Source of the DNA: Ascidiella aspersa | Lineage: Eukaryota | Assembly (NCBI GenBank): GCA_963924565.1 | Contig: OZ004614.1 | Location: 10,354,001-10,418,000, forward strand | Reading direction: 5' to 3' | DNA length: 64,000 nucleotides | Shown: in pieces, positions 14,192 to 38,300 of the stretch | Layout: each line of letters starts with the position of its first letter | Position numbering within the stretch: the stretch's first letter is position 1 | Notes under the pieces: model-generated | Told to the model about the DNA's origin: nothing | The model's input: only the letters and a program-made list of their open reading frames with translations | Database searches by the model: none | Program-made: the position numbers and the translations under genes

Positions 14192-17100
14192 TTACTCCAA
14201 AAGGTTTTCCATTTCGCGTTCTAAATCATCGGTGGATGATCTCTTCGAGTTCGTTTGACTTTGCGACTGAGACTGGAAGCTCATTCCTGTTAGGTCTTCG
14301 CCGGCGAGTTGTTTCATTTGTTCTTTTTGCTGAACGAAAAAACAATAACTCTTGTATTTTTTATGTTAACAATGGAAAGAAATGTTTTATTTCTTGCAAA
14401 TGTTTAGTTGATTTAGGACTAGGCGAACCATACATTTTATAAGATAGCTTCTACAATAATCTATACGGATAAGCAAGCATTTAATATAAAAAATATTAAT
14501 CTAATAATATTTAAAAAAGGCTTTTTAAAAATGCTTTCTTATCTATAACCAAAATTACATTTATGCACCACATGTTTCATATAACCTACTTTTAACGAAC
14601 TTTACATAAAACTTGTTTGAGATTAAAGTTAAAAATTTTCATATATATTTATACGTTATATTACACTGTTAAGTAAACGAAATGTTACCTGCTGCAACAA
14701 ATCGCCTTGGTCGTCTCCGAGGTCCATCAATCCTTTGATGGTTTCGTGAACCAAACTCGCGAGTTCAGCGTCAGTCTGATCTCCCTTTGACGCTTGCATT
14801 TGGTCGACTGCGTCCTGCAAGCAGAAAACGTGTTGATATTTTAAAGTTTCAAGTCGACAAATGAAGCAGTTTAAACTCAATGCTCGCAGCGTGTAGAGGC
14901 GCTAGATTCCATAATTGGTAAATTTTTTGCGCAATGCTCGAAATGTTCAAGTTTCTGTTTGTTTTCAAAACGCTCAAAAAAAGGCACTCGACTCAAACAA
15001 ATTTTGCACATATACAAATTGTTTGTTTTTCTATCTGTATTGAATCAAAGCATTTTTTAAGGCATAGTAAGATTCATAAATTTCGTGTACATTTTGACTG
15101 TAGCAATTTACCAAGGCGGACTTTTCCTTTTGAGTTAAGTTGACATAACTTACCGCTTGTTTGTAAACGTCATTAAGCTTGCTGTACGTTTAGCTTAAAA
15201 TGAATGCGTTTCAAAATTCATAGAATTAATAGTCGATTGTTAGGATGATACCTTGTGCCGGTGTTTGACCTGGGCTTGTGATGACTTTAATGGTTGAAAA
15301 AAAATATTTTTTTGCAAAAATGAAAACCGACTTTAAATTTAACATATGTCGTCATACGAAAATCTGGCAAACCTCGATGTTTGAGTGTAATTCCTCCTGA
15401 CTGCTGACACTTTCCGCAGCCTTCGCGTTCAACTGCTCGATCGCTTGACTCGCCTTCGCCTCGAGGTTGGTCGGTAGGTCAAGGTTGTCCGAATTTAGCT
15501 TTGCAATCACCTGACGCACTTCGCTCTGGAACTCTTGGTGCGCGATCGCGTCCGCCACGGATTGCTGCAAAACGTAATGCAAATTGTTTTGCTCTGTCAA
15601 AACACAACGGTGACAAGCCCTTTGGAAGCAAAACTTTTATTGAAACAAAGCCCATTGTGAAACCCTTGGAGCAACTATAGCCGGGGTGGCCAAAACGCGG
15701 CTCGCGAACCCAGTTATATGCGGCTCTTACGTTCATGTTGCACTTATGATTTTTGGAACGTTTTGATTTCGTTTGGCAAAGGTATAGCGGGATTATTGCC
15801 GGTTCCGACTCAGACTCTTTGCCTTAAGGCCATTGTATTGTTAGTAACAATTTTGAAACAAGACAAACGGAAAAAATATTCCCAAATAGTATTGACAAAT
15901 GACATTGTATCGAGAAATGGGTGTTTTTTTCACCCAATGCGTCGCGTCTCACTTCTAAATTAAAATTTTGTCCACGCACTTTTTTCGCGCTTCGTGCGAT
16001 CGCTTTGTGGGAGTGAGTAAGAAATGGGGTGATAGGCAATTTTTTTGTTCTAGTGTGTAAAGAGTGGTTCTATAGGAAGGCAGATTTTTTTATTGTTACA
16101 ACCCACACTTTACACGTTGCAGATGGAATAGTATTGTTTGGAAAAAGGATCATGTCGACACTTAGGAAAAGAAAAAAACGCAATGTTGCACGCTGCATGT
16201 TCTTTCCATCATTATATCTAATCTGGAAGCCATAAGAAATTAATTAAAGTAAAATCAATAGAATAATTTTTGTTGTTGATAAACTGCTATCGGATTGGAC
16301 AAAATTCAATTCCCTTCAGGCAACTTGCAAACATTAGCTCACCTCTTCCAACTCGCTGTCCAGATTGGAAATCTGTGCTTGAATCTGCTGCTGAGCTTGC
16401 TTCTGTGCCGATTCGCCTCCCTCGCTTAAGGATCCTGCGTTGATCTGATTGATCAGCTTCTGGATGTCGCTGTTTAGTTCCTCCTGTGGGCGAAGCGATT
16501 TTGGTAAAGAAAAGAAAAAGCGGCATTTTTGCATAATTTATGGGAAAGTGGCATGTTTAACTAATTTATGGGAAAGTGTCATGTTTGGCTAATTTATAGA
16601 AAGTGGCATTTTTGACTAATTTATGTTTCGGTAAAGCAGGGTTTATTAGAGTGGGCCAAGAAGGTTTAGCAGAGAGGGGGTGCGAAGGGCTACTTCAAAT
16701 TGATTTAATACCAAGCATTGCTGCTGAGAATAACTGTTTGGTGCTGCTTTTTCGGCCGTTACTGACACATGTTATTTTATGCCAATACCTTGATCTGTTG
16801 TTCTCAGTGGTATTAATTTTGTTTTGCCTTTTTTGCCTTGAGTTAAAGCGTCCCTAATGTAGTTACACATTGTGTTATCAGGAGGTTTCGCACAATGCCA
16901 TTCCCAAACTATATTTTGTTAACTTTTACTATAGAAATGCCTTTTTTCGCGTTTGGCACGAAATTAATCTACATTTTACTACGTGTTCTCCCGCTTTAAG
17001 GAAATCTTTGACAAGAGCGCGGTACCCAGAATGGCAAAATCTTTTGCTGTGTGAAATTACATATTCTGAAACGACAATGAGTTTTTAGCGAGTAATCTGA

Positions 17101-17381
17101 AACCGACCTTTTAGTGTAACGTTTTAACCTTATTTTTACGTTCATCGTATAAAGTCTTGTAAAACAACGACAGTTTAATGCAGCATTCTTAGTTTATAAT
17201 AATACCGTAGTGATTATTCCCAAACAAATATAATTGCTATACACAAAAAAGTACGACAAAAAAACTAGTTTTATACCTGGTTGTTGGCAGCGTCTTGAAT
17301 TGATTCAAAACCCTGACTTTGTGACTGGGAGCTGGTTTGACTTTGCCCGTTGCCGTTGTTGATTTGGATCTGGGTTTGACT
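14192..17381 (-). CDS. Mucin C-terminal Cys-free Gln/Glu-rich tail, 5 phase-0 exons ending in TAA at 14192-14194
   Basis: [23 protein letters not shown]...; [17 protein letters not shown]...; [23 protein letters not shown]...; [11 protein letters not shown]...; [45 protein letters not shown]. All have canonical splice sites. Confidence 0.82.
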
Positions 17382-20300
17382 CTAAATGTTAACATAAAAT
17401 GCCCTATTTAAACAAATATACCCCAAATGCGTCCAGCAAATCAACATGGAAACCTATTTAAATTGCATTCCAAACTTAGAAAATCAAGTTTATTGCTTTA
17501 CCTGATGGTTTCCACCGGTGCTGCTCGATCCGCCGGTTTGCGTGTTGTCGTTGGAGTTGACAAGACCGTCGATGATGCTGTTCACCTGATCTTGAATGCT
17601 CTCTACCTCCTGACTCTGACTCTGCGACTGCGACTGCGAACCGCCTCCGCCGGAGCAACACTTCACTCGAATCTCATAGTCCTCGCACACAGGATGCGTC
17701 GTCTGCTGGTTGGCGATGCACTCAAGACCAACGTTTACGTCGCAACTCACCACCTGCCATTCCTGGTAGGAGGCAAACTCGGCCACGGTGCCACCCACCG
17801 GCCTGCATTCGATCTCGGTGGGCGACTCACAGATCTCCGTGCCTGTGCTTCTAATCTTCTCATATGTTTCGATGTCGTCGCGCTCCGGCATTTTCGGACG
17901 CGAAGCGCTGATCCAATCGGACCAAGTGCACGCTTCAGTCGTGGTCGTTGCCTCGGTGGTTGTTGTTGTTGCCACGGTAGTGGTTGTTGCAACTGTGGTG
18001 GTAGTTGCCTCAGTGGTTGTGGTTGGTTCTGGAGTTGGTTTCATCGTCGTAGTCGTGGTTGTTACTGGTTCTTGTGGAACAGTAACTGTGGTTATTTCAC
18101 CAGAACCTGATTCTTCTTCAGTTGTGGTCGGTACTGGTTTGGTTGCAACTGTGGTAGTGGTCACTGGTTCTTGGGGAACGGTAACTGTGGTTATTTCACC
18201 AGAACCAGATTCTTCTTCAGTTGTGGTCGGTACCGGTTTGGTTGCTACTGTGGTAGTGGTCACTGGTTCTTGTGGAACAGTAATTGTGGTTATTTCTCCG
18301 GAACCAGATTCTTCTTCAGTTGTGGTCGGTACTGGTTTGGTTGCAACTGTGGTAGTGGTCACTGGTTCTTGTGGAACGGTAACAGTGGTTATTTCTCCGG
18401 AACCAGATTCTTCTTCAGTTGTGGTCGGTACTGGTTTGGTTGCAACTGTGGTAGTGGTTACTGGTTCTTGTGGAACGGTAACAGTGGTTATTTCTCCGGA
18501 ACCAGATTCTTCCTCAGTTGTGGTCGGTACTGGTTTGGTTGCTACTGTGGTAGTGGTTACTGGTTCTTGTGGAACGGTAACAGTGGTTATTTCTCCGGAA
18601 CCAGATTCTTCTTCAGTTGTGGTCGGTACTGGTTTGGTTGCTACTGTGGTAGTGGTCACTGGTTCTTGGGGAACAGTAACTGTGGTTATTTCTCCGGAAC
18701 CAGATTCTTCTTCAGTTGTGGTCGGTACTGGTTTGGTTGCAACTGTGGTAGTGGTTACTGGTTCTTGTGGAACGGTAACAGTGGTTATTTCTCCGGAACC
18801 AGATTCTTCTTCAGTTGTGGTCGGTACTGGTTTGGTTGCAACTGTGGTAGTGGTTACTGGTTCTTGTGGAACGGTAGCAGTGGTTATTTCACCAGAACCA
18901 GATTCTTCTTCGGTTGTGGTCGGTACTGGTTTGGTTGCTACTGTGGTAGTGGTCACTGGTTCTTGTGGAACTGTAACAGTGTTTATTTCTCCGGAACCAG
19001 ATTCTTCTTCAGTTGTGGTCGGTACTGGTTTGGTTGCTACTGTGGTAGTGGTCACTGGTTCTTGTGGAACAGTAACTGTAGTTATTTCACCAGAACCAGA
19101 TTCTTCTTCAGTTGTGGTCGGTACTGGTTTGGTTGCTACTGTGGTAGTGGTCACTGGTTCTTGTGGAACAGTAACTGTGGTTATTTCTCCGGAACCAGAT
19201 TCTTCCTCAGTTGTGGTCGGTACTGGTTTGGTTGCTACTGTGGTAGTGGCTACTGGTTCTTGTGGAAGGGTAACAGTGGTTATTTCTCCGGAACCAGATT
19301 CTTCTTCAGTTGTGGTCGGTACTGGTTTGGTTGCTACTGTGGTAGTAGTTACTGGTTCTTGTGGAACGGTAACAGTGGTTATTTCTCCGGAACCAGATTC
19401 TTCTTCAGTTGTGGACGGTACTGGTTTGGTTGCTACGGTGGTAGTGGTTACTGGTTCTTGTGGAACGGTAACAGTGGTTATTTCACCAGAACCAGATTCT
19501 TCTTCGGTTGTGGTCGGTACTGGTTTGGTTGCTACTGTGGTAGTGGTCACTGGTTCTTGTGGAACAGTAACAGTGGTTATTTCTCCGGAACCAGATTCTT
19601 CTTCAGTTGTGGTCGGCACCGGTTTGGTTGCAACTGTGGTAGTGATCACTGGTTCTTGTGGAACAGTAACTGTGGTTATTTCTCCGGAACCAGATTCTTC
19701 TTCAGTTGTGGTCGGCACCGGTTTGGTTGCAACTGTGGTAGTGGTCACTGGTTCTTGTGGAACGGTAACAGTAGTTATTTCTCCGGAACCAGATTCTTCT
19801 TCAGTTGTGGTCGGTACTGGTTTGGTTGCAACTGTGGTAGTGGTCGCTGGTTCTTGTGGAACAGTAACTGTGGTTATTTCACCAGAACCAGATTCTTCTT
19901 CAGTTGTGGTCGGTACTGGTTTGGTTACAGCTGTGGTAGTGGTCACTGGTTCTTGTGGAACTGTAACAGTGGTTGTTTCACCAGAACCAGATTCTTCTTC
20001 AGTTGTGGTCGGCACGGGCTTGGTTGCTGCGGTGGTGGTGGTTATTGGTTCCTGCGGCGCTGGTGTGGTAATCGTTGGTTGACAGGCAGCAGTGCATCCG
20101 CAAGCTTCGACATCGGTGTACGAATACTGAATTTCGGTGCCGTTCTTACATTTCATAGCGATAACACGCTGAACGGTTTCGGTAGGCTGGCAGCAGGAGC
20201 ACTTACTGTTAGCACCGTATTCCGTCCAAAAGTAGCTGTCGCGGCAGAAGCCATCGCAGTAAGATTGTGAGACGGGTTGGTTAGATGCACAGCCGTCAAT

Positions 20301-23300
20301 GACCATGTACTCAGGTTTGGTACTGATGTGCCTTCCGCAGGCGAAGCATTCGCTCTCGCATTTTAGACAGCAACCGTCGTCGGTCGAAACCACCTTGCCA
20401 TTGTTGTTAACGCAAGCATCGTGGTCAAATGGCGGGCACGGGTTTTTCATGCACTTCTCCTCGTGGAAGCCGTGCTCGTTCATTTCCTCGCTGCACATGC
20501 ACGTGTGGCATTTGTCAGGCGCCCATTGTTGGCCGAGCTGTAACAACATTTTGCATTACTAAACTTGTAAAATACTATAACCTTCCATTAATAATTCAAG
20601 TATTTAAGCATCTACGTGACGTTTGGTGAATTTCAGAAGTCTTCGATCAACATTAAAACATGACATGGTTGTATTTTGGGAAATATAAAATTAGACTAAT
20701 ATATTTTAAACCAAAACGCAATTTAAAAACTTGCCATTTGTTTAAACAAGCAAAAATACAGACAAAGATTGTGAGATTTCATAAGGCTAAACCGTACAAC
20801 TAATCTTTTACGTCGTTTGTATTGTTTTATTTTTTATTTTTACAAGGCAATCATTTGTACAATAAATCAAGGGCGACGTTGTGTGATCTCAGGGTTCAAC
20901 TTCTAATACACAAGACCGCTAAAGGTTACTCACCGGTTTCTCCATGTCATTGTCGCAGCAGACCTTCTTGGGCTCGCACGAAAACGTGGGACAGCAGTCC
21001 TCCGTCGTTTCGACAAGTACATGACAGGCCGGGCATTGTGGCACAGTTTGCGGAGGACAGGGGTAACTATTCTCGATGACAACCATGCCGTTAATGTTGG
21101 TTACGCACATGTACGATGAGCAATTGTGCACGAATTCCCAGTTGCTTCCAGACTTGAAAACAACAAATGCGACAGATGACAATTAAAGTTCGTTTAAAAC
21201 AGCATTCTATGGAAATTTTGGTGATGTTAGGTAAGAGATTGCTACGCATGTTTAGACGTATGGTATGAGGTTACTTTTGATATCATAGTTACAAGTTTTT
21301 TTACCAGACAATACAAAATATAACAATAAATGGATGAATTTAAAGACAAGCCGACTATTTTATGTCAGTATTTCATAACTTGGCGTTTCTATCAATAAAA
21401 AAACGCAGTCATTATTTGGTTATATACTTTTTAAAGTATTATGTTGTGTTTGCTAAAAATACCAACGCTGTGCGACTTCCTTAATTCGTACAAAACAACG
21501 GCATGTCGTCTGTATGAAGATACATTCATCGGGTTAAAACATACAAGGGTCTTTCACTTACCTCCTTGCAGCTCAGTACTCCTTCTTCGTGAACCGCGCA
21601 TCCGTTGGGCACGCATTGGCCGCAACACTCGCCAGCGGGAACAATGTAGTCGTGGCAGGGTGGACAACTTGTATCGCAGTCCATGACCACACAGGTCTCG
21701 ACGTGGCACGAGTTAGCGGAGTTAACGTCGTCGAGGCACTGGCAGTGCGTGCACACGTCAGGCTGCCACTCTTGGCCGGGCTGAAAAAATAATACGGTTT
21801 TAAGGGCTGAAATAATAACGTTTTAAGTAAAAAAATTATACTTTAACCTGACAAAGCATGGTTGTGCGAAAGCTTGTCGAGACTTCAACACAATTTGTCT
21901 TTATATAGTGCAACCTGATTACTCTATTTGGAATTAGACAAATACGGTGATTTACAAAGATTGTCAAGTAAAAGTAACTCACGTTCGTGCAGATATTCAC
22001 GTTCGTACGGGGTTCTAAACAAACGTATTTTTGTCCGATTGCACCATGTGAAATAGTTAAATTTGTGGAAACTTTGGCCGATGTTGAAATGGGTTAAGAA
22101 TAAGATTAATGTTAATTTGTTGCTACAATTCGAACACAGTAGCAAAGGATCAACGAAGAAACCACAAAATGGTTATCGAGTCAGTTGACCCTGAAGGTAT
22201 AAGGAATTGAGGTTACAGCAGTTAAGGCGATATAAACGTAGTATTTTTTAACAAACTATGGTAACTTTAAAATTTGGAAAAAATAACCGAAAATACAAAA
22301 ATATATACTATCTAAAGAAAGAGAAGGCTTGTTCAATAAAATAATTGCATCCACTATAATACTTCTTGGCGTTCTATAACTCTTACCGCAATCACGTCAA
22401 TCACCACTAGTAAAGCCCGTTCTCTTATTTCAAAATACGTTATCAACACGTTATACTCAAGTTTAAAAGCCAAGTATCCGGAAAACAAGAAGCTGGTTGA
22501 ATATATATATTTTGCCAAGTGAGGCCGTCAGTTTATTAGTACTGATTTTTGTTTTAACTAAAGTAAGAAAGGGTTGGTGTCGTGTTGTGTGGCCCACTCA
22601 CGTTGTACACTTTGCCGTCGACCAAGCAGATGTTCTTGCTGACGCACGTCACGTGACGACAGTTGCACGAGTCGACTTCGATCACAGATTCCTCGCACTG
22701 GGAACATGGCTGGTTGGATGGACACTGGTTGCACTCTGCGAGCATTACGTATACTCTATGTTAATGCGAGGCTTAGCAAACTGGCGCAAAATCACTTAAT
22801 GACCAGTCGCAGCAATTCTTAACACTGCGACAATTTAGAATAAACACTGTTTGATATTTGTTTAATTTTCGCAAAACATAAACAGTTGGTTTGCACCTAA
22901 ATTATTTTAATTCAACCCAATACATTTATAAGTATTTCTATTTGAAATCAGCTGACGCGTTAGCAAAAATAATTTTCTTAATACTTTTAATATTCGATTC
23001 GCCGTTAACCTCAACAAGATAAAACTAGTTCAGAAATGATTTAATTGAAAGTAATTAACTAAGCGCTGTAAAAGACAATGGTTTTGTGAAACTTGAACTC
23101 CATCTTTAAAGAGCAAGGTAAAACAATTTTGCCTGCTGAATCTCTTATGGCACTAAGTCAGTGAATTTACTGAAGTGCATTCAGTCACCTTTTTACACGG
23201 CTTACCAGGTAATTTGGGTAAGTGATTGACTTGGACTTTAATCGTTTACACATTTATTATTACCTTCCAAGGGTTTTAATTAAACTACATTACTGAAACT

Positions 23301-26300
23301 GGGTTGACGTCAAATCCGGTATTTTAACGTCAATTCCTACTTGAAAAGAGGTTTGCTTCCTACTAAACTTGGTTTGTTATAGATGTTTTCCATGCGAAAT
23401 ATCGAAATGGAACTAGTTTGACATTTTAATAGCTTAACATTTATTTTGAAAGCCGTTCCTTTTGCTCGTACTCGATTTGCCATAATCCTGAATAGGAAAA
23501 AAATCCCACGCTTACCGCAAGAATGCAACGGGCAGCATTCGGTCTCGTGGGTGACTAGGTGCTGGTTGGAGCTGCACTGGGGCGCCTCGGGACATGGATT
23601 GCGTGATGTGTTGCAGTGGCAGTCGTACTCCGGGATGCACTCGTCATTGTCGATGCGTTCCGGTACGTATCCCGGTGGACACTTTGGAACCGGAACCACG
23701 TCACAGCCCTCCTCGCCCTTGCCAAGTTCGTAGTTGCAGGCTGCGCGAAACAAACAGCCGTTTTTTGGCGAAATAGCGAAACAAAAGTTTCGTTTTTAAC
23801 GCGTAAATGCTGCATTTTTTGCCTTTTTACTTTGCGGGTTTTGACTTCTTTTTTTACAGTTATAAGGCTAGCCGAACGACAAACTTGTTTTAAGTTGTGT
23901 ATACTTTGTTGGCACAACACACTATACTGGATGTTTTCTGTAAAGGAACACATTAAAAGGTAAAGCAGGGTAAAACACGGCACTTGCAAAATAAAAAAAA
24001 ATAGAAAATATAAGAAATTTGAAATTTGAAACAAGAAACAAAGCTGCACACGTAGAATGAATATCAAAAGCAATACAGAAGTTGTTTATTTTCAACATTG
24101 TTCTTCATTTTCAACATTGTAAAAAAATGCTGCTTACTGTATGCTTATTATTCATTCCACGGTTACATACAACTTCCAGCTATTATTCTCCAAAGACTCT
24201 ATTCACAAGTTTTAAATCTAGGTTTTAGACATGTGTTGTCGAAACATCAGACTGCAAGTTTCTGATAAGCAAAAAAAATCTCATATAGCTTAAATGAAAG
24301 AAACTCACTGCAGTCGTATTGTGGGCAGCACGGGTCGGTTGTAACCCTGCGTTGGGGCACCTGACAGGGGCCACAGCTGGGTACCTCCTCTTGGAAACCA
24401 GCTGGACAGGTGACCTTATCGCAGACGATTTCGTGGCCCACTGAACAGCTGCACATCGTGCACTCGTCTTGGAACCAAGTTTCGCCGAACTGAAAAAAAG
24501 CAGCAAACAGTGAAGATATGCCAAATCAAGTTTTTAAAGTACACGGTCCGATTGAAAAAATGTCCCATACTTGACATTTTATTCGGATACCGATAGACAA
24601 TATTTGAATACAAAGTATCGCGATACGGCCGAAATCAAATTGCGTCATTACTATGCTTAAAACAAACAAAATAGACAAATATCAAATGGTAAAGGTTTTT
24701 TTTTTCAATTTGTTAAGTCAAAACGTGTTTTAGCGTTAGCAAATTCAGTTATCTCCAGAATCTACTTTTTTGAAATAGTTAATAACTTTTACATTATAAT
24801 CGCTGCGTTGAATCGCATATATTTCCGGAATTCTCATATAAATTTGGTATCGGATCAGCACCAATGCATCCCTAGTATCGGCTAAAGGCACCGATATTAA
24901 CGAACGTTCTTAAACTAACCAGCAGTTAGCGCCAGGTGGATATGACGTTTAATTACAGGATTTAACATCAGCTTGGAATTCAATTACACGCTACACCGCC
25001 AGGTAAACTGGTTAATTAGGTTTAGGGCACGTTTGAAAGTGTGCGTTCTGTGTTTTTAATTGGGAATCAAGCAAACATATAGGCACTGCTGGGCATAATG
25101 ATCGGAGGTTGTAGTAAAGCGTATAACAGTATCAAAACCCATACAGAAAGAGGTATTATTATGAACGTTTCAAACAACTCTTTATTCATTTTCAACATCT
25201 TAAAAAAAGATGTTGAAAATAAATAAAGAGTTATTCGAAACGTTCAAATTGATACCTACTTCTGTATAGGCTTCGATATTCCAATTACGTATATGTATTG
25301 TGTTCTGACTTTTCTTAAAAAAGAAAGTTCTCATTGGCTGCGCTGCGAATCTACCGCACACCCATGGTGTACTTGTTATGCGAAACAAGTTGTGAAAAGT
25401 TGCATTATTATCGAGGCAAACACTTTGGTTTACCGTGGTTTTTCGCTGTTGCACTCACCCTGTACGTGTTGTTGTGCTCGTCGATGCACTTGTTGTCGCA
25501 CTTGAAGCAGCAGCCGTTCTCGGTGAGCACCTTCTTACCACCGCGAGCCTCACAAGTCGTAGGATCGAAGGGCGGACACCAGATGTGAGTGCATTTTACC
25601 TCCAGGAATCCGGTCTGCCTGTTCAGCTCGCTGCCGCACACGCAGTTGTGGCAGTCGTCCACGCTCGGTGTGGGTTGGCCGGGCTGCAAGTGTCAAAAGG
25701 TGTACAAAAGTTAGTGATCATAGCGCGTGTATTAGAAACCACACCGATGGGTTTATTCCGTGTTAAAAAGAGCGCTTATGCGATTTTTAAATTCGACTAA
25801 ACTCGATGTTCTTTCTTTGTCGCGGAGTCGGGATGACTTTGGGTGTGCTTTCACTTTTTTAAACCACTTTACTTAACTTTGACCTTTGGGTAAATTGATT
25901 CGACTAAGGTTATATTTAAACCAAATTTGACTTAAACTCAAGGGTTGAAGACAAACTAGTGGATTTTATAACCTACTTTTTAATCGACTGGGACTTATTG
26001 TTTTTTTTAAAATTGAGTTATTTGCAACACTGTCGTATTGGTCAGTAACAGTTTCTTAAAAGAAGCCTGAAGGCAAGCCCACCGAACGTATCATTAAAAA
26101 CAAAGGAATAGCTTCAAAACCACGAACAACAACTTACCAGAATAGCCGAGCCGTCCACGCAGCAGACGTTATCCGGCACACACTCGAAACTGGGGCAGCA
26201 GTCCACAGTGGTCTGCTCGAGTCGGTAGCAAGTCGGGCATGACTTGACATCCAGAACCGGGCAGTTGATCGGGCTTGTTGTAATCTCGGTGTTGCCGTTG

Positions 26301-29300
26301 CTGTCCATCACGCATTGCTTGGTAGTGCAGTTGGACAATTCGTCGTGGGACTGGCCGACCTGAAAGGTGGAAAACGATAACCTGTTAGTGCTTTGTGCGT
26401 GGGTGTTATCCCTGTTTTCGCAATAAACCATCGTAGGGCTAAAAAGTATGATCTATTGTCTAGGTCTCCCTGATCTTAACAGTCGCCTTTCGTTGCCGTT
26501 TTTTTTCTGTGCGATTGGCAATACAGCGTTTTTAGTACATAGAAACATCTATATTTATATTTAGTCACACAAACAAATATAAACGCAAGAAAATAATTCT
26601 CCGTGCGAGACCTTATAGATTGACTGTTTAACGCTTATCCATTACAGTTTTTTGTCAAATGTGTAATACTTGACCTTAAAACCTAATCTGTTTAGCGCTC
26701 GAATAAAACACTTTCACAGGCCGGTCGAAAAATCACGATCCAACTCAAACGGGATTTTCTAAAAGTGAAAACGTGTCGAAAAGCCCTACCTCATCCACAT
26801 TATACCACACAGCACACATATATGTAAAACCTGCCCATATAAATCCGCCTAACAACTGCCGCCTAAAGTCCTCCTTACCTCGGCACAGAACATCTCTTCG
26901 TCCGCTCCCTGTACATGGCATCCTGTGTCGAAGCACTCTCCGCAGCATTGTCCAGCCACCGGTCTGTATTCGGAGCAGGGCGGGCAATAGGTGGAGCAAC
27001 TGTAGGCCATGCACTGGTATGCCAGGCAGCCGTGCTTGTCGGGCATCTGGTTTTCGGCACAGGTGCACTCGGTGCAAAGGTCGGGGAACCACATATCACC
27101 GGGCTGCGAAGCAACATTATTAAACGCTGTTTAGAAAGTATTTCGGATGAACTTTATCCGGGGCTCAAAACAAATCCGTTCTATTCTAAAATGAATCCAC
27201 AATATAGCAATCACTGTTGATGGCAATTAGAAGTAAAATCTGTATGAGACACAATTTATTAATTTAACAAAAAGCTATATATTTTTATCTTGTTAAATAT
27301 TTTATTTCAGAACATTTCTCATACGTAAAATTTCCTGTGATTTTCCTGATGTTCAATACAACCAAATAAAAATCAAAAACCATGGAAAACGATAATAATT
27401 TAACGTGTAAAATTAACATCGCCAATTAAAGTTGATTTTAACTCAACTAGATATTGTAAAATGTAATTCGGCATACAAGGTTTGAAGATATACCGAAACA
27501 AACAGCACGGAAAAAGGACACTGTTTTTCTAAATTACTGTTTAAACTGGTCCACATTTGTTACCTGGTAGTCGGTGCCGTTGTCTCTGCAGACTCCCTTA
27601 TTGACGCAAGAGTAGCTCTCACACCCGCAAGCGTCCTCGTGGATCACTGTGCTCTGGCACTGGCCGCATATCGTAGAGTCTTCCGCGCACTTGTTGCATA
27701 CTGCGTCGCGCGAACAAAAACACTTTGGTTATGCGCAATATCTTATACACAGCGCTGTCGCGCACAAAGCATTACCTTTGTAGACATTTGCATCTATTTC
27801 TGCTTAATTTAATAAAAATGTTATTTACTGTAGAACACCAATTTTAGATGGAATTCAACACCTGTCTTAACAAAGTTTAGTTACAAAATCAGTCACTATA
27901 ATTACACTTTATGATAATTAATAGTTTATAAAATACTTTACTCGAATATCGCAAAATAACAAAAGATCATGGCAAACTCTCTTTAGAGCAAAACAAGACA
28001 CAAAATACCAATCAAAAAACAGCTCCTCTGGTAATTGTAAGTTTTACCAACGTTTCGACAACCTATGTTAGTCGCCTTCGTCAGGGTGAATGACATGGAA
28101 AAGACACAAAATGGTGGCAAAAAGCTGCCGTCGCCCTGACGTCGACTGAAACAGAACAAACCTTACCGCAAGTGTGAACGGGACAGCAATCTCCAGGGGT
28201 GGTAACAAGATGGTGGAGGGGCGGGCAGGCGTGCGGTGTGGGGCAGGGGTTCCTGTCCGGGTTGCACTCGCACTGGTACTCGGGGATGCAGTGGCCCGGG
28301 TTGGCCTGGTTCATGATAAAGCCGGGTTCGCAGATAGGCTGGGGAACTGCCTCGCAATCTCCCTCTCCCTTACCAAGTTCGTAGTTGCAAACTGTCAAAA
28401 AATTGTTTTGAACTTGTTGCTCGCGTGCAAGTGGGCATATTTTGCCTTGGCGTGAAGATTTTTATTGTGTAACTCAAAAAGGCCTTATTCGTAATCGTTC
28501 TGAAAATGTTATTTAAAGTAGAATGATTAAAATTTTGCCAAGTATATTAACTCTATATTTGTGGTAAAGTTATACCGATGTATTGCCTATTACATGACGT
28601 TTATTTGTATAATATTTAACGACAAAAAAAATACAGTCCACTTTTTCAAAAAAAGATCGTCTTCGAAAAAGTGCACAGCGCCTTTGATTTCACGATGCAA
28701 TATATCGGCGCTCAATACACACTTCAAACAGCCCATAAAAGTCTAGGCCTAATTTTGTCAGGCAGATGATGTTTCCAACCAACTAGAAACAAGAAACATT
28801 ACAAGATAGGCCCGACCAGTGTTGTAATGACTCAAGTCATTGACTTGACTAAAGTGCACTTAAGTCACCGTTTTCAAATGACTCGACTTGACTTAAGTCT
28901 TTTGGACAAATGAATTGACTTGGACTTAAGTCATTTTGTCAAATAACTTGGAAGTAAATTAAGTGGTTTTTTTTAATTTATCTCAAGTTTTGCAACATTA
29001 ACCACTTTTATTGCTGTCCATTGCGCTTGTGTGTGTTTTTTTAATTGAATTGTTGCTTGCAATGGGACGAGTTTGCCAATTTTAATTATTTAACAATTTA
29101 CTTTTATGACAATGACATGACTTGAAATTGACTTGCTCTCATAATGACTTGACTTGGACATAGGTTATTTTTCAAAATACTTGACTTGGACTTAAGTCAT
29201 TTCAAACTGACTTTTTAACAACACTGGGCCCGACCACAAACATCTTACCACAGTGGTACTCGGGGCAGCATGGGTCTGATCCCCGCACCAGTTCGGCAAC

Positions 29301-32300
29301 GTGGCAGGGGGCACATTCCGGGACTTCCCCGGTCCAGCCCCCTGGGCACGACGTTGGGGTGCAGGCGATGGCCTGGTTCTCCATGCACGAACAGAAGGTA
29401 CATTCCTCGCCCTCAGGTATCCAGCTTTCTCCGTACTAAACAACAATGTAATATACGTTAGCACCAAAGAGGGGTGGATTGCAAATGGCTGTCCACTAAT
29501 GGCTTTTATAATTTCTAAACGTTTAAAATTAAACCGATTTGGAAAAACGATACGGGTTAGCATTCGAAGTTTGTACACTGTTGGACGGAAACTAACAATT
29601 TACTATGAACAACCTAAACACAGAGATTCAAAATGCGAAAGGTGGACATTTGTTGAAAAACAGTAACTAAAAACGATGGATTATATTATGCATTTAGTGT
29701 AAAAAGGGTTCGAGATTAGAGAAATAGGCTTCGTTGATATTAACGGCGTTAAAAATGGACATTGTAAAGTTTACCATAGGCATATAGGCAATTTTCTGTT
29801 CTTGGTTGACCAACCATAGTAAAATGTACACACCCTAAAGCAACCATAGGTTACAGGAACGTGTTCTACACTTGTCGCAGAAAAGCTATAGACCAACTCG
29901 AAAGGGTTTACAGCTGCTATGGATAGTTCTTCAAACGAAAGCCAACCAAACCTTGTAAATGGTGCCGTCTTCTGCCACGCAGTTGGTGCAGTTTGACACG
30001 TGTTCACAGTTGCCGTTCACAAGCACGGTGTCGGTGGGACAGAAGCATCCCTCGGTGGCAATCTCCTCGTAACAAGGCACTCCGCTGTTGTAGTCCGCGC
30101 AGCTCTGTTCACAGTCGGGCATGCACGGCAAGTAGACGCGGTCAGACGGGCATTCAGGTGCTACGGAAAAGTTGTTTAAAAATGTTTATGGATTTTGTTG
30201 CAGTTAAAGGTTTGGCGCATTTGCGAAGAAAGATGGAAGGTTGTTTGACTTTTTTATAAATAGGATTATGGCTTGTTTTGTTACAATTTTTGAGAATAGG
30301 GCTACCGTACATGTACAAGACATTTGATAATAAAACTTAAACACTAATTTTAGCATTTTTTTTAATAAAACATTTTTTGCATAAGCAAATTTACACTAAT
30401 TGTTTAGTATACCTAATCTAAAACATAACCCGGTTTATGGTAAAAGAAAACAATTCATTGGAAGTTCTCATTGTAAAGTCTGTTGGCCTTGGGGGTTCTT
30501 TGGACTAGTTTTAAGCGGTGCACAAAGGCCTAATTGGAATATTTGTGATTACTTAAATTTGTGTGTGCAATTGGAATTATTACTTTCAAAAGAACAAAGT
30601 TTAATTGAAAAAAAAATGCTTGTAGGACCGAAACAGAAGATTTTTAATACTATAGTTTTATGATGTCAATTTATGACATAATTTTTGCCTCGCTTGTCTG
30701 CGCATTGCAAAACTGCATATGTTTTGCCGGAATTTAGTTTCGCCCTTTTGTTTGCATTCGCCTCACAAAACTGAGCGAAACTTACGACAGAAGTCTTCGC
30801 TACGCCAGTTGATGCAGATTCCCTCTTGCATGCAGGCTGCTGCGTAACCGTAAACAGCCTCACACGCCGAGTAGTTACCGCACTGGGAAGTGTCGTACTG
30901 GCAGATCTCATAATAGCGATCCGGGGCTAGAACAGCGTGGCACGCCTGGAATACAAAACGTCGTAACAAGTTATTTCAGCGTAAAAGTTGGACAAAACGT
31001 TTTTTTTTTAAAACAAAGACAACAAATAGAAAGGCGGTAGAACACACAGGTTGTCTAATTTAGTATACGGCTACGGCACTTTTATAACACAACAACAAAT
31101 AACTAAAGCTCAAAAAACTAACGCACCGAATTGGAATACAAACCGTCGTTACAGATTGGCTTTACAGTTGATTTTCAAGCTAATGCCATTTGCTTGTTCG
31201 ATTCTAACCGGAGTAACTGTTATGTAACTTAAAACTAATAAAGCCATGCACATGTAGCAATGAAAGGTGTTGTTGTAACATTCAGTTAATCAAAACCTAT
31301 GCAAATCCACCTGTAATGTGTTCTCGTAACGCAGACTTTTATGTGCTGCCAAAATTATTTAAAATGTGGCTTTATTGTGTGTAATTTCAACTACAATATA
31401 GTATATTTATGCAAGTGTCGACCGTTGTTATCATAAAACGCCATGATTAGTTCTGTTACATGCAAGTTTTTATTCCTCTTTTGCAACTAATAAACATTAG
31501 GGGGCGGTGAAATGCAGAGTTGGTATAATTCAGTAGATAGGACTTTAAATATAGCAACTTTATAGCACTGAAAAAATTAATAAAGCTTTAAAAACCTAAA
31601 AAAAAAAGATTTGTAAATATTTTTTTTACTACTTTTAAGATCTTTGGCACTTGCCTCGAATACGTCAGACTTAATGATCTCGCACTTCTCTGAGGGGGGC
31701 ACTGTGCAAGGTAGAGGGGGTCGGAAGCAGGATTCGGACTCGTTGAAAACCAGCCAGCTGTTGCCGAAGTCTTCGATCTCGGTGACAATGTGGCCCGATC
31801 TGTTGGTGAGTTCGTCACTCTGGTCGTTGTTGCATACGCCTGTGTTGAATCGATTAAAACGTTAATTACAACAAAGCGTCATACTTTGTCCATTGTAATT
31901 CCGTGAAAAATATTTGTATTTACGTAAAAAAGTATATAAACGGGCGTACTTTTATTCTTGACTAGGTTCAATAAATTGATGACTTTAATTGTATAAAAGT
32001 GTTAATAGAATCAAAAGTGTTAACTCGGTTAAAATCGTTTATTCTTTAGATAAGTTCCGCTTTGTGGATTCTATTGTTTCAATGAGTGTGCTAAATAGCA
32101 AAGCAAAAAGTTGTAAAGAAAATTAATTAAGATCGCGTGTAGGTGATCAAAATTGTTAGTTTTTCATAGGTTGCCAAGAATATATTACACCAAGCAAAAA
32201 TTAAATCGACATACAACTATGTTCATCTAAAAATAAGGAGTGATGGTTGGCCTGGACAGACCAAAAGAATCATTATTATTATACGAACACCCAAACGCTA

Positions 32301-35300
32301 CAATCACGTAAAAATACAATTAGACACCAGTAAATTACATTCACTTCTCGATTTGTTATTCCGGCTAATCGCTTTACCTACCACAAAGTCCCTCAGTCCT
32401 GTCGTAATAGACCGAGTAAGGAACAATCAAGCTCCAGCTGTAGTCCTTTCCAGTGTACGTCATAACCAGGTTTAGGGCGGGAATTGTGACGTAGAAGAGG
32501 CTCGTGCCACGCATTTCGACGTGGACCCCTCCGAACTCAGCAGGAAGTGAGGTCTTGCCAAGAAGGGAGCCGCCATCCACAGAGAACTGTTAGATGACAA
32601 ACATGTTTCTATTATAAAAATAGAAATGAGCCCGATCTAACAAAGATATAAAAAATAGGGATCCTTTTTGGGGTTTCCAGATAATTGTTAAAGGGATCCC
32701 AAAATAAAAAATAGTTTAGCGTACCGGCACATTGTTTTACTAAATGTATTTAATTTAAGTAAATTGCTACGATGGATCGGAATCAGCTCATACCCTACGT
32801 CACAAGTTCTTAAATTGATTTAAATCTGACGCACATGGAGGGGGTATGAAAACATTTTAGTATATTTTCTTAAACCTGTAATATACGATAAACACAAACC
32901 TAAAATTCAATGCCTCCAAAACTAAGAATATAACTTATGCTACGGTATTTTTTAATTTACTTTTACATTCATTACTATGTGTGGCGCTATTCACACATGC
33001 GAACTATTAGTTATATAGACTACCATCTAATGGTCCAGTGCATTTGTAACTTACGGTATAGTTCTTGTGCAGGACCACGTGGGTCGATTCGTAACGAATA
33101 GTCATCTTTCTGGTGCAAGTTGTTTCTGGGGCTTCGGGGCAAGCAACGTTCTCCATCCAGATCTGCAATGAATGTCACAGTAATTTAATTATCTATATGT
33201 TTTTTAAGTGTTTTTTTAATGTTAACGTAGACTTTATAAAAGTAATTGCTTTAAATATGGTGTTGCTGTCAGGCATTGTTTCAACTGATGAATGGTTCTT
33301 CATACTGCTCCAACCAAAAATATTATAGGCTTTCTGGTGTCACCTTGACACATTATAACATTAGAAAAACACCAGAAAACGGAAATGCAACCCAAAGTCA
33401 ACGCGGCCACTTGGCTTCCGGAAGCGGTTTGTTTTAGTGCCCACAGAAATTGTTTTCTTAATTACGAAAGGCTATAAAAGAAAAAAACTTATATCCCACC
33501 TCGTATTCGTGAGGGTGGTTGCTGTGGTGTTCGTTCATGTCGCGCGATAGCACGAAGGTGCAGTTGCCCTGGAAAGGATAGTAGTAGCCGTCGAAAGTGA
33601 AGAAGTGGGGATCGCCCTGGCCGAAGCAGTAGCCTGTAAATAAAAAATATTTCCACCGTGTCTTATCGAAAATTCACTGTATAGTTTGTACCCATTAAAC
33701 ATATCTGTACGTATATATTCTCTTAGGGTTTCAATGGCAATTAATAGATGCTAAACAGATAAAACGACAATAAACAATAAAAACTGCTTTTATTAGAAAT
33801 ATAAAACAAAACGCGTGCAAACGTATCTTTCGCTCAGAGACCCTAACGAACAGAGAAAAATAGGAATAAAGTTTGTTTATCAGTGGGTGAACGACTATAT
33901 CTGGAACTGGTGCTTTTAATATACGGCAGTATTTGAATGCATGTTAACATGAGACATGGAAAATTTTAACCCGGCTTTGAGTTTCAGTGGGTTACTGGTA
34001 TGAAGCAAAACCGTTTAATAAAACAATCGAAAAGTTCATCATTTTATCCATTTTCAATTTTGCAGTTTAATTTTACGATTCATCCAAAGCTTCAACCCCC
34101 CAAAACAAGCAGCGTTACTCACACTGGCATTCCCACTTGCACGTGCAACCGTCCTGCACTTCAACGGCCGGGAAGCCGTTGACGCAGGTGGGACGATTTT
34201 CGTCGGTGCACATCACGGTGTGATCCACGCTCTCGGTCCTACAGTTGCCCGGCGTCTCCTCGACGCACGTCAGTTCCACACAGAGGGACTCGTCCCCTCG
34301 CAGAGGCCAGGTGTCGCCGGGAGCGTGTGCGATGCCCTATATACGACCAAAACGCGACAATTTGATACCACTGAATTAAAGAGAAGAAGCGACTGGAACC
34401 CTACACTTGCCCTATTAGGGATGTCCGATACTTACATTTTTTATGACATTTTTTTAGACATTTTATTCGATACCGATAACCAATATTTTGGACAAAAACT
34501 ATCGCGTTCCGCTACTAATTCGATACCAATTGATGTTATTAAGCTAAACAAGCATAACAATAGCAGGGTTTCTTGAACTTTTTTTACTTCGGACCCCTAA
34601 AATTTATTCGCGTCGACCAAGGAATTGTAGAGATGACGTCATAAATTAACGTCACAATACAAACAGACTTTATAAATCTACTGTTTCCGGTCCGAAAAAT
34701 GTAAAATGGAAATACAGACTAAAATTCTAAAGAAACATTCTGTGCAAAAACGTTTGATTAAACTCTTTTCTTTGAAAAAAAAGGTTACTTTTTAAATATA
34801 CACTAATATTTACATTGCCTAAATGGAGCCCCAAGGGGTCCATGGACCCAGTTTAAGAACCCCTGACCTATAGGGATCTCCGATACTTGATATTTTAAAG
34901 GAAAAAAGGATTTTAGGAAAATATATATATTTTTTATAAACGATGCGTCTTACTCGAAAATATTTAGCAAAGCGTCAAACTCGAAATATTTAGCAAGATG
35001 GTGAATAGGCAAAAACACGAAATAGCTTGATTCGCAGGTTACTTTTATTCCATTCTACTTCGAATGTTACAAATAGTAGTTGAGCCTCACCTGACTGTCA
35101 ACGCATTCGCACCAGGGCTGGGTAGTGGTGGGGATTGGTTTGGGGGTCGTTTTGGGGGTGGTGGTCGTTTCGTCACGCGGCACGGTGGTGGTGGTGATCA
35201 CTGGTTCAGGGGTGGTGGTAGTGGGAGGGGGAGGGGGGCAGCTGCTCTCCGGAATGCATTTGTTGTTGACGTCATCCCAAACCTCGTCTGAAAGTGAAAA

Positions 35301-38300
35301 ACATGTTTTTTTGTGAATGGCGTTTATAATAAGCTGTAATATAAACTTGGATATACAAATAAGTGTGAAAACTGTAACGTTTTAGCCAATTGTGTTGAAG
35401 ATTTGACTAAGGCGCCGTAAGTGTTAATGTTTATAGGTTTTAAATGGCTTCGTCAGCGATAAGAAAACTTGAATCACTCGACTACACCGTTGCCTAGCCA
35501 ATTTTGTTACTTTCGAGTCAACCAAATAATCTTTTCAAGTTAGAGATATACTTTGCGACATTTGTCGTTCAAATAAATTCTATTCGTTAAAAAGCATCAC
35601 AGGCCAACCAGCATCGCAATACTTATAAAGATTGTTAGCACTTTATAGCAAATGTTTGCCGCATGTTTTCCTAAAATAATTTATCAGATTCGGTCATTCT
35701 TAGTGGTTGTCGCGCCAATAAGGCATAGGTTGTAAAAACACTACATCACCAGGATAAAATTAGAACAAGAGACCTTGTCTATTCCGGGCAAAAGTCTGAT
35801 ATAATCCTAGATAATTCAAAACCGAATCTCGTTGTAAACGGCTTATGGAAAAATTGGGGGTCACACTGTGATTAAAATTGGTTGTCTCCTAACACACAAT
35901 ACAAGATACTTAATGAATGAACGAAATTTCCATATATATACAATGGAAAAGTGGTCCGTCGTCCTAAACCTACAGATCAGTTATAAGAACAATCGTTTAC
36001 TGCAGAACCCACCTTCTTTGCAAACGACGTAGCAGCCCTCCAGCATAGGCCAGGCGCAGTCCTGGGGGTTCCTATCGTCACAGGTGGGTGGGCACGGGTT
36101 GCCGCAAGGGTCGTACTTCCACTCGCAAGTCTCGTTGTCGTATCCGAGCCCGAATCCCGGGTTGTACGCCTCGCACATTACCGGGCACACTTCGTTGCTT
36201 CTCCAGCTCACGCACACTTCCGCGTCGGCGCAGGCCTGGAACGCGGAGAAAAGGAAGATTAAATGACTAAGGCCAGTGGTTCTCAACCGAGGGGGGGGGG
36301 GTAATTCACCATTAGGGGGCAATTTTACTGCGGGCCTTGAATTTTGCTTCGCGTGGACTACGGTAGGCAAGAATTTTTTACAGATGACGTCATATATTAA
36401 CGCGAAAATACAAATATCGGTCCAAATAATGTGTTAGTGAAATGCAGTCGAATACATTCAGTGATTTAAATTAAACTGTTTTTTTTTTATTAAAAATTGA
36501 TTACTTCTTTCTTCGTGGACCCAGTAAAACTAGTTCACGGACTCCCAAGGGATCTTTGGACCCCAGTTTAAGAACCCCTGGTCTAAACGAAACCGGATTT
36601 GAACTCATAAATTAAAAAAGCACCAGGGCGAAACGTGAGACGATTGGTAAAAAAGATTGTTTTTCAGGAAAAAAACAAAACTCGTTTGCGCGCTTGTGAA
36701 AACAAACCAAACAACCAGCAGCAGCAACTGCATATGGACAGTACCTGTGCGTAGCTCGCCACCGCAGTACAGAAGCATTCGCAGTCGCCTCCGGCCGTGC
36801 AGCCGCAAGTGTCGAACAGACAGTCCTCGTAGAACTTGGTGGGGTCGACCTTGGCGTGGCATTCGGCGAACACTTCACTCGTGATAATGGCGCACTTCTT
36901 CTCGGCCCAGGGCGCACGATCGGGGTCTGACTCGCACGGGTTCTGGGGCGAGTCGGCGACGGGGCACGTTTCCATGATCTGCATTGAAATGCGTTTGAAA
37001 TATGGGGGTTCTTTGTAGGGTTTTGCGGAATGTCTTCGCTCGAATACACAGTATCAATTTCGACCGGCTAGGCGCTGTTGTAACATTGCGTTTGACAATA
37101 TAACCATCGTTTAATTTTAAACTCCTTGAGAGCGTATTAAACTAAAAATTGAATTTGCATTACAATATTCTTTAAAGTCGGAGTGAAACCCCAACAGTCC
37201 AAAACAATCTAAAACTCAAAACAATTTTAGGTTTTAAGAATATTTCGCTCTAAACCGGAATACAAATTTATAACGATTGTTTACAACCACAATGTTACCC
37301 AACTTTATATAGGCAATCCTTTGTGTTTTCTAACATCCATTTCTCCCTTCTTTTTTGTCTTATTTTTAAAATGACCAGCTTAATAAAACACCAACTCACC
37401 CTCCAATCGTCTCCAAATTCATTTGGATTTGCTGTGATGTCACCGTCACGCATTGTAAAATCGTTGCTCATATCGCCGTCGAAGCTACCACAGAGGCCGC
37501 ACACCTGGTGGGTAATAGTTAAATAAAATAAGAATGCTGCGAACAAATTCGCATTATGCGGTATTGAGTGTAAACATTTTTAAACGGGCTGTAGCTCAAA
37601 TATAACAACGCGCCCAAGATTATTTAAACCTTTAAGTTTACATAGACATTTTTACATACACGTTTGCAATGAAAAAACAGTTTTATTAAATTCTGCAATA
37701 AAAATAAAAATAAACAAAAAACACAATAAAAAAACAATAAAAAAAATAAAAATAAACACAATTTGCAATAAAAAAACAGTTTTATTAAACATAATTCATA
37801 AAACATTTGATTCAAAATATATGTGTGTGCAAAATACTCCAAAAAGCCATCGTCTGTGCAAAACACTCGTTGTTTAAATTTCTACATTTATCTTGAAAAA
37901 AAAAACGTTATAGTTATCATTGGCTTAAAAATTATGAAAAGCCGAAAAGATACATACTATCTATATTGGGTTAAAAATGGTGAAAGATCACTTAAAGCGA
38001 GTTAGTTACCTTGTGCATGTGTTGCGGATGGAGGCGGACTTTGACGGTATTTTCCTTATTCCACAAAACGTCGATTCCGGCGTTGGTTTCGACAATGTAG
38101 TAGATGGAGCCCTTTCGGACTGTGTACTTCACACCGTGGGGTGCTTCGGGAAAAGCGCTGTTGTGCTTGATCGACACAACCTTAAAAATAAGGGCAGTTA
38201 TAGTTTAATGTGTCGCAAATTTGGACAGGATTTCTTGTTTACAAAGCATTGCAATAAAACATGCAAGAAAGTTGTAAGTCGTCAACGATCGTCATTTTTT

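Follow-up and report, generated by a model that had tools for sequence, protein, structure and literature searches.

Does the cystine knot (CK) of a gel-forming mucin have to close the chain? Models of mucus and von Willebrand factor (VWF) assembly take the CK as the chain end and place the glycosylated domains inside the backbone. The question is raised by a multi-exon gene on the minus strand of the sea squirt Ascidiella aspersa (assembly GCA_963924565.1; 308.6 Mb in 75 contigs), which runs from about 57034 down to 14192 of the window, that is, of the whole 64,000-nucleotide stretch analysed (contig OZ004614.1, positions 10,354,001 to 10,418,000; C8:10354001-10418000 in our own numbering). 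The original prediction, made from the sequence letters, saw here an 'inside-out' mucin in which an intact CK is followed in the same stop-free exon by about 715 residues of Thr-rich sequence and a CysD domain. We found that the order of CK, Pro/Thr/Ser-rich (PTS) array and CysD is real, conserved and transcribed across the CK/PTS boundary.

All of these elements are encoded by a single large exon (Table 1), which contains a VWC-like domain, the CK, the PTS array, CysD and the start of a tail rich in SQ and Q. Its open reading frame (ORF; 17490-20549, minus strand) is 1,019 aa long and has no in-frame stop after the CK, and the 5' boundary of the exon was confirmed by a spliced RNA contig. Domain, homologue and fold searches were made exon by exon. 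Pfam places Cys_knot at aa 84-159 of the ORF (24.9 bits, cutoff 24) and a full-length Mucin2_WxxW domain further along it, and the CK matches the solved VWF CK (4NT5) with an E of 1.9e-7, the CSCC and the terminal C-x-C-x3-C being aligned; all three VWF-type inter-chain cysteines are kept. From the last CK Cys (codon 20084-20082) to CysD there are 717 aa, 40% T+S and 12% P, very close to the length first proposed, and 860 aa in all follow the CK within this exon. Each of the 20 PTS units carries EEESGSGE, and an acidic Ser-Gly context of this kind is typical of glycosaminoglycan attachment. Judging from the motif, the PTS arm may be a mucin/proteoglycan hybrid.

The transcript could be followed across the boundary. 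Run X3 is RNA-like, having depth in exons only and zero in introns, and its 6,017-nt contig splices 20377-20537 to 20934-21152, 21562-21780, 23516-23740, 24309-24489, 25459-25684 and further exons; the boundaries of six VWC exons (the five from 20934-21152 to 25459-25684 and one of 134 nt) are verified by RNA. A 300-nt contig of the same run (19986-20285, depth 20) leads from inside the CK across its last Cys (20082) into the PTS. Raw RNA reads from run X4 cover 19940-20339 at a depth of 3.8-5.2, with six reads over 20058, and their first mates lie on the plus strand, which fits minus-strand RNA in most stranded libraries. Read mapping covered 19940-25939, a range that takes in one PTS repeat unit of the array, and no splice joint at the end of the CK was seen in the RNA of X3 or X4. 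At the DNA level, contigs from two further samples, X1 and X2, span 19984-20654, again across the CK/PTS junction. Given that RNA and DNA contigs are unbroken here and that the frame stays open, there is no support for termination, splicing or a break in the assembly directly after the CK.

We looked for a stop or a chimera just past the CK in particular, and three trivial accounts of the arrangement were rejected: (i) a splice or stop directly after the CK, as there was neither a joint nor an in-frame stop; (ii) an assembly chimera at the CK/PTS junction, as independent DNA and RNA contigs cross it; and (iii) chance continuity of the reading frame, against which both the synonymous excess in the repeats and the conservation of the homologues argue. 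With regard to the repeats, copies differ from their consensus 5, 8 and 70 times at codon positions 1, 2 and 3, respectively; 70 of these differences are synonymous and 13 are non-synonymous, where 28% synonymous would be expected at random. The 70:13 excess indicates that the array is under protein-level selection in the frame of the CK. Polymorphisms in the exon from other samples were synonymous in four out of five cases.

The second line of evidence comes from homologues. When the VWC+CK segment was run with HMMER against 1.84 billion representatives, 125 matches came back, five of them below 1e-30. Relatives in which Cys_knot is followed by Mucin2_WxxW, a search for which had been suggested from the outset, do exist: P0001 (304 aa) and P0003/P0126 (345/395 aa) carry both domains in a single ORF, as does P0127 (350 aa), which came from another search. 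Four homologues with CK, linker and CysD, all from other assemblies, are 48-64% identical, and P0126 starts at the boundary of the window exon (LQPGKEW vs LGQQW). The CSCC and the final Cys are kept in this gene and in all CK+CysD homologues, and CysD itself is 40-53% identical to that of P0001, P0126, P0127 and P0129 and 87% identical to that of P0130. In these homologues only some 35 to 105 aa separate CK and CysD, and the long array in this gene is therefore a lineage-specific expansion. The linker of P0127 contains SGSGSGLGSGSGEESGESGE, a motif related to EEESGSGE; so is the ETGSGE of P0002 and P0128, two UniParc/MetaClust entries in which the CK leads straight into PTS. From their range of UniParc numbers, we take P0002 and P0128 to be Ciona predictions. 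A whole-exon homologue search, using words from VWC-CK, found none within its length range, longer gene models falling outside that range, and a look-up of P0126 in the ESM Atlas gave generic CK clusters only, below 0.9.

Extensions past the CK are otherwise modest. The gene is single-copy in this genome, and the two other CK genes found there, L003 (G000:C1:17397828-17398064) and L004 (G000:C4:29780100-29780300), have a stop 5-6 aa past the last Cys. Most of the 125 matches end no more than about 25 residues past the CK, and a few mucins (P0057, P0102, P0023) have a charged, low-complexity tail of 60-200 aa after it; among the 125 matches, no folded domain or long PTS was found in those tails. 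Separately, P0130, a 106-aa entry from a marine transcript catalogue, has CysD and then more PTS with no SQ tail, and a close relative may thus alternate CysD and PTS after its CK. In P0004 and P0005, from other assemblies, QWSCC stands for QCSCC, so that the first inter-chain Cys is lost, and the ORFs end 12-17 aa past the CK; these are possibly non-dimerising paralogues in other species.

Beyond the large exon, five more exons and a total of about 1,090 aa after the CK had been proposed. With the five exons included, the post-CK part comes to 860+35+47+64+42+45 = 1093 aa, which matches the proposed figure; the exons themselves are plausible from sequence and unconfirmed by reads. They were drawn with AG acceptors behind pyrimidine tracts, in phase 0, and with GT donors in all but the last, and they form GC islands (0.44-0.55) in introns of 0.23-0.39, the same as the RNA-verified exons do. 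Proposed tail exon 3 can be aligned over 48 aa, with no gap, to the tail of P0126, and the two end at the same point; the match is a weak one (pairwise E 0.08), reaching 1e-4 in tblastn without composition correction. In P0129, EVINIERRVNDLIDEI matches the stretch after CysD, and about 150 aa of sequence that is acidic and helical come next. The intron that precedes proposed tail exon 3 holds, close to that exon, a 28-bp tandem repeat at 16517-16625 (3.9 copies).

If the CK still dimerises, its position would matter for the shape of the polymer. A two-copy prediction of the CK plus 20 linker residues scored 0.33, the best control scoring 0.02, and this marginally passed a mark that 21 of 30 solved one-chain pairs reach, as against none of 23 proteins whose structure is a single chain. 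At least 70% of contacts are the same from run to run (pLDDT 71-72), and the predicted interface holds C54 and C56 of the CSCC and the last Cys, C93. The dimer model that the original prediction had called for is accordingly positive relative to its controls, but its margin is narrow and it may owe something to memory of the VWF CK.

The nearest described protein is Ci-GFM1 of Ciona intestinalis type A (LC072665), which has FN2, a chitin-binding domain, D assemblies, a central PTS of about 50 aa, VWC, a CK and five inter-chain cysteines (Nakashima 2018, Nat Commun 9:3402, PMC6109156). It was cloned by reverse transcription PCR (RT-PCR) and rapid amplification of cDNA ends (RACE) as a protein of 2,880 aa with a CK called C-terminal, and it ranks third in abundance among the proteins of the gut chitinous membrane, where it is enriched relative to the pharyngeal mucus cord (PMC6109156). 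According to a 2021 review, its organisation and function are still to be investigated. By its architecture, and by the fragments P0002 and P0128, our gene is a sea-squirt homologue of the Ci-GFM1 type and probably the orthologue.

We consider it likely that the gene encodes a normal VWF/mucin scaffold homologue of this type whose last scaffold exon runs past the CK into PTS, CysD and tail. Because that exon lacks a stop, the chain would continue past the CK for some 1,090 residues, beginning with an O-glycosylation array of 717 aa in which an acidic Ser-Gly motif occurs 20 times; a single CysD would come next, and then a tail that is rich in SQ and Q and probably helical. The secreted protein would dimerise tail to tail through the CK, where the three inter-chain cysteines are kept, and multimerise head to head through D3, where CECFC and CEWKY are kept. 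In the VWF CK structure the last Cys pairs with its twin on the dimer axis. Because this residue sits on the axis, two glycosylated arms of about 860 aa or more each would emerge next to one another from every CK=CK node. This would give a backbone with paired bottle-brush side arms, to which the CysD/tail tips might add non-covalent or enzyme-made cross-links, and the CBM14 head would fasten the polymer to chitin fibres in the membrane of the gut barrier. Both this head and the match to Ci-GFM1 point to a chitin-framed gut membrane, and the enrichment of Ci-GFM1 in that membrane over the pharyngeal mucus cord favours a role in the gut barrier rather than in a filter net. A comb or net topology, as first suggested, is a reasonable inference from these sequence features. 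The fuller proposal is a conserved sea-squirt design, undescribed so far, in which a chitin-anchored VWF-like backbone carries a pair of PTS/Ser-Gly arms at each CK=CK node, CysD and Gln-rich helical tips cross-link the chains, and the branched net forms the matrix of the gut chitin barrier; we regard this as possible but rather doubtful.

Several points weigh against reading the gene as a scaffold extended past its CK. The read mapping reached as far as the first PTS unit, with CysD and the five tail exons being sequence-predicted beyond it, and the RNA at the junction itself is thin (X4 depth 4-5; short X3 contigs). The Pfam score of the CK is barely over threshold, and the dimer prediction passed marginally, perhaps because the model remembered the VWF CK. 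The AlphaFold2 model of P0126 is poor (pLDDT 52, pTM 0.26), too poor to place CK and CysD, although it hints, at low confidence, at a helical tail. Finally, a rough count to the end of the CK in our gene gives about 3,050 aa, already more than the whole of Ci-GFM1, which suggests that Ci-GFM1 may have no long extension or only a short one, that it may exist as a CK-terminal isoform, or that the form which was cloned may be a shorter one. With the only described family member drawn as CK-terminal, the published domain map may be incomplete or species-specific.

This last point leads to an alternative that we think improbable, namely that the extension is encoded but stays outside the working polymer, through a CK-terminal splice form or through removal of the arm after secretion, so that the polymer is conventional, linear and VWF-like. 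The reported C-terminal CK of Ci-GFM1 (PMC6109156) is what such a splice form would look like; a minor isoform could escape notice at the low RNA depth of the junction, and there are consensus-like GT sites within the CK, e.g., GTAAGT near 20205. However, splicing at sites inside the CK would destroy it, no joint leaving the CK was present in either RNA run, and no in-frame stop follows. With regard to removal after secretion, the sequence from CK to PTS contains no basic cleavage motif, and the conservation of CK and CysD in a single ORF, together with purifying selection on the repeats, shows that the arm is translated and maintained.

A further scenario, to which we give about the same small weight, is that the CK no longer dimerises and is merely a folded spacer, in which case the product, with its one long glycosylated tail, would be monomeric or would pair through D3, and no polymer would form. 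The dimer prediction is open to this, being marginal and perhaps remembered, and the QWSCC of P0004 and P0005 indicates that loss of an inter-chain Cys, and with it of dimerisation, occurs in the family. Yet the CSCC and final Cys are kept in this gene and in all CK+CysD homologues, the predicted interface includes exactly those residues, and the 60-200 aa tails of some other mucins indicate that an extension as such is tolerated. That the continuity is an artefact of assembly or gene modelling, with two neighbouring genes or a mis-joined repeat making CK and PTS seem continuous, is very improbable indeed. Assembly errors are common in long tandem repeats, and the 99-bp unit may have been given too many or too few copies, but the DNA contigs of X1 and X2 and an RNA contig cross the same junction, four homologues from other assemblies have the same order, and the frame is kept through the array. 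The artefact reading is thus largely refuted, the repeat number alone being uncertain.

The remainder of the gene is what one would expect of the extended scaffold that we favor. By every scaffold feature of its sequence it is a member of the gel-forming mucin/VWF family; it departs from the family layout in two respects, in that its CK is not terminal and its PTS/CysD cassette is placed elsewhere than between D3 and D4. On exons 35984-51049 Pfam recognises the three VWD-C8-TIL assemblies of the N-terminal part, D1, D2 and D'D3, and the D3 cysteines of the head-to-head disulfide, which the original prediction had noted, were found in the exon translations, CECFC in 36667-37053 and CEWKY in 35984-36433, as checked at the level of motifs. 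At the usual PTS position, for which only about 40 Pro/Thr residues had been claimed, there is indeed just a 44-aa PTS, and no CysD was found between D3 and D4. Pfam locates the D4 domains at 32377-33673 (VWD), 30766-30975 (C8) and 29934-30185 (TIL), VWC matches at 26852-27130, 24250-24525 and 21529-21822, and, in the head (52658-56800), fn2 (E 1.7e-13), CBM_14 (E 2.8e-9) and EGFs; the start codon Met at 57034 is tentative. The label 'inside-out' overstates the case, since the canonical D1-D2-D'D3-PTS-D4-VWC-CK order is intact and the cassette is a C-terminal add-on in the CK exon.

Some further observations concern the layout. Within the C-domain region, a block of some five exons looks as if it had been duplicated (25459-29435 vs 20377-24489, minus strand), and the P0002 and P0128 fragments match both exon series in tblastn. 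SQSQSQ-type runs occur on the minus strand at 56669-56830, just past the putative signal peptide, and at 17600-17640, 17300-17340 and 14250-14275 in the tail, so that an SQ low-complexity element is common to both ends of the protein. Introns hold high-copy repeats at 21740-22339 and 25140-25339 (summed word depth 2x10^4 to 2x10^5 in the DNA runs); loose ends and joints crowd at 25177-25281, and these intronic repeats are probably transposon fragments.

Table 1. Positions of the gene's domains and exons within the window, from the N-terminal to the C-terminal end.
Feature	Position	Strand	Basis and remarks
N-terminal head	52658..57034	-	Putative signal peptide, SQ-rich run, EGF x4, FN2, CBM14, EGF
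D1 and D2 assemblies (VWD, C8, TIL)	41186..51049	-	Pfam
D'D3 assembly exons (TIL/VWC-like, VWD, C8 with CECFC, TIL with CEWKY)	35984..40580	-	Pfam and translation
Central PTS of 44 aa between D3 and D4, with 13 P and 17 T	35115..35246	-	Translation
D4 assembly exons (VWD, C8, TIL)	29934..34336	-	Pfam
C-domain (VWC-type) exons	20934..29435	-	Pfam VWC and X3 RNA contig
Large exon, 3,036 nt, 1,012 codons	17502..20537	-	Phase 0 at both ends; AG acceptor 20538-20539; donor GTAAAG at 17501 (CAG/GTAAAG)
VWC-like domain before CK	20349..20537	-	Match to solved VWF chain 7P4N, E 7e-4; conserved in homologues
Cystine-knot domain	20082..20348	-	Pfam Cys_knot, 4NT5 match, homodimer prediction
PTS array, 20 x 99 bp (33 aa)	18064..20051	-	Tandem Repeats Finder (TRF), 20.1 copies; in frame with CK
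CysD (Mucin2_WxxW), CTWSDW motif, 8 Cys	17658..17924	-	Pfam aa 876-964, E 5e-21, profile 1-88/88
Proposed tail exon 2, 35 aa, SQ-rich	17277..17381	-	AG/GTATAA, phase 0; GC 0.48 vs flanking introns 0.30-0.36
Proposed tail exon 3, 47 aa, Q-rich, heptad-like	16343..16483	-	AG/GTGAGC, phase 0; weak P0126 match
Proposed tail exon 4, 64 aa	15373..15564	-	AG/GTTTGC, phase 0; GC 0.55
Proposed tail exon 5, 42 aa	14689..14814	-	AG/GTAACA, phase 0
Proposed last coding exon, 45 aa and TAA stop (14192-14194)	14192..14329	-	Sequence

If the branched-net proposal is right, a CK can be an internal branching node, and chordates have at least two solutions, the vertebrate layout with PTS between D3 and D4 being only one of them. 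A chordate mucin that is conserved and bears its main glycosylated arm on the CK would also offer a natural test of how polymer topology relates to the barrier gel, and it bears on the proposed transition from a chitin-based to a mucin-based gut barrier (Nakashima 2018, PMC6109156). Our literature search found no published description of a post-CK PTS/CysD cassette. In Lang et al. 2016 the CK is located towards the C-terminal end and CysD inside PTS regions; such a cassette is not reported there.

How, then, does this gene compare with known systems? It shares with Ci-GFM1, also from a sea squirt, the FN2 and CBM14 domains before D1, the series D1, D2, D'D3, D4, VWC and CK, and a very short central PTS (44 vs about 50 aa); it differs from Ci-GFM1 as described in having PTS, CysD and a tail after the CK, none of which is mentioned for the Ciona protein. 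With human MUC2, MUC5AC and MUC5B it has in common the D1-D2-D'D3...D4-VWC-CK series, PTS repeats in one large exon and CysD (WxxW), whereas the EGF, FN2 and CBM14 domains of its head set it apart. Those mucins polymerise by disulfides through CK and D3, and the corresponding cysteines can be read from the sequence of our gene. Their CK comes last, and the space between D3 and D4 is where they have PTS and CysD, whereas the central PTS is vestigial in our gene and the main PTS and CysD follow the CK. In P0057, P0102 and P0023 the CK is likewise not the last element, but CysD comes before D4 and the tail has neither a folded domain nor a long PTS. VWF has the same scaffold, the CK dimer cysteines (4NT5 match) and the D3 motifs CxCFC and CEW[KR]Y; it carries VWA domains in place of PTS and has only two residues after its CK.

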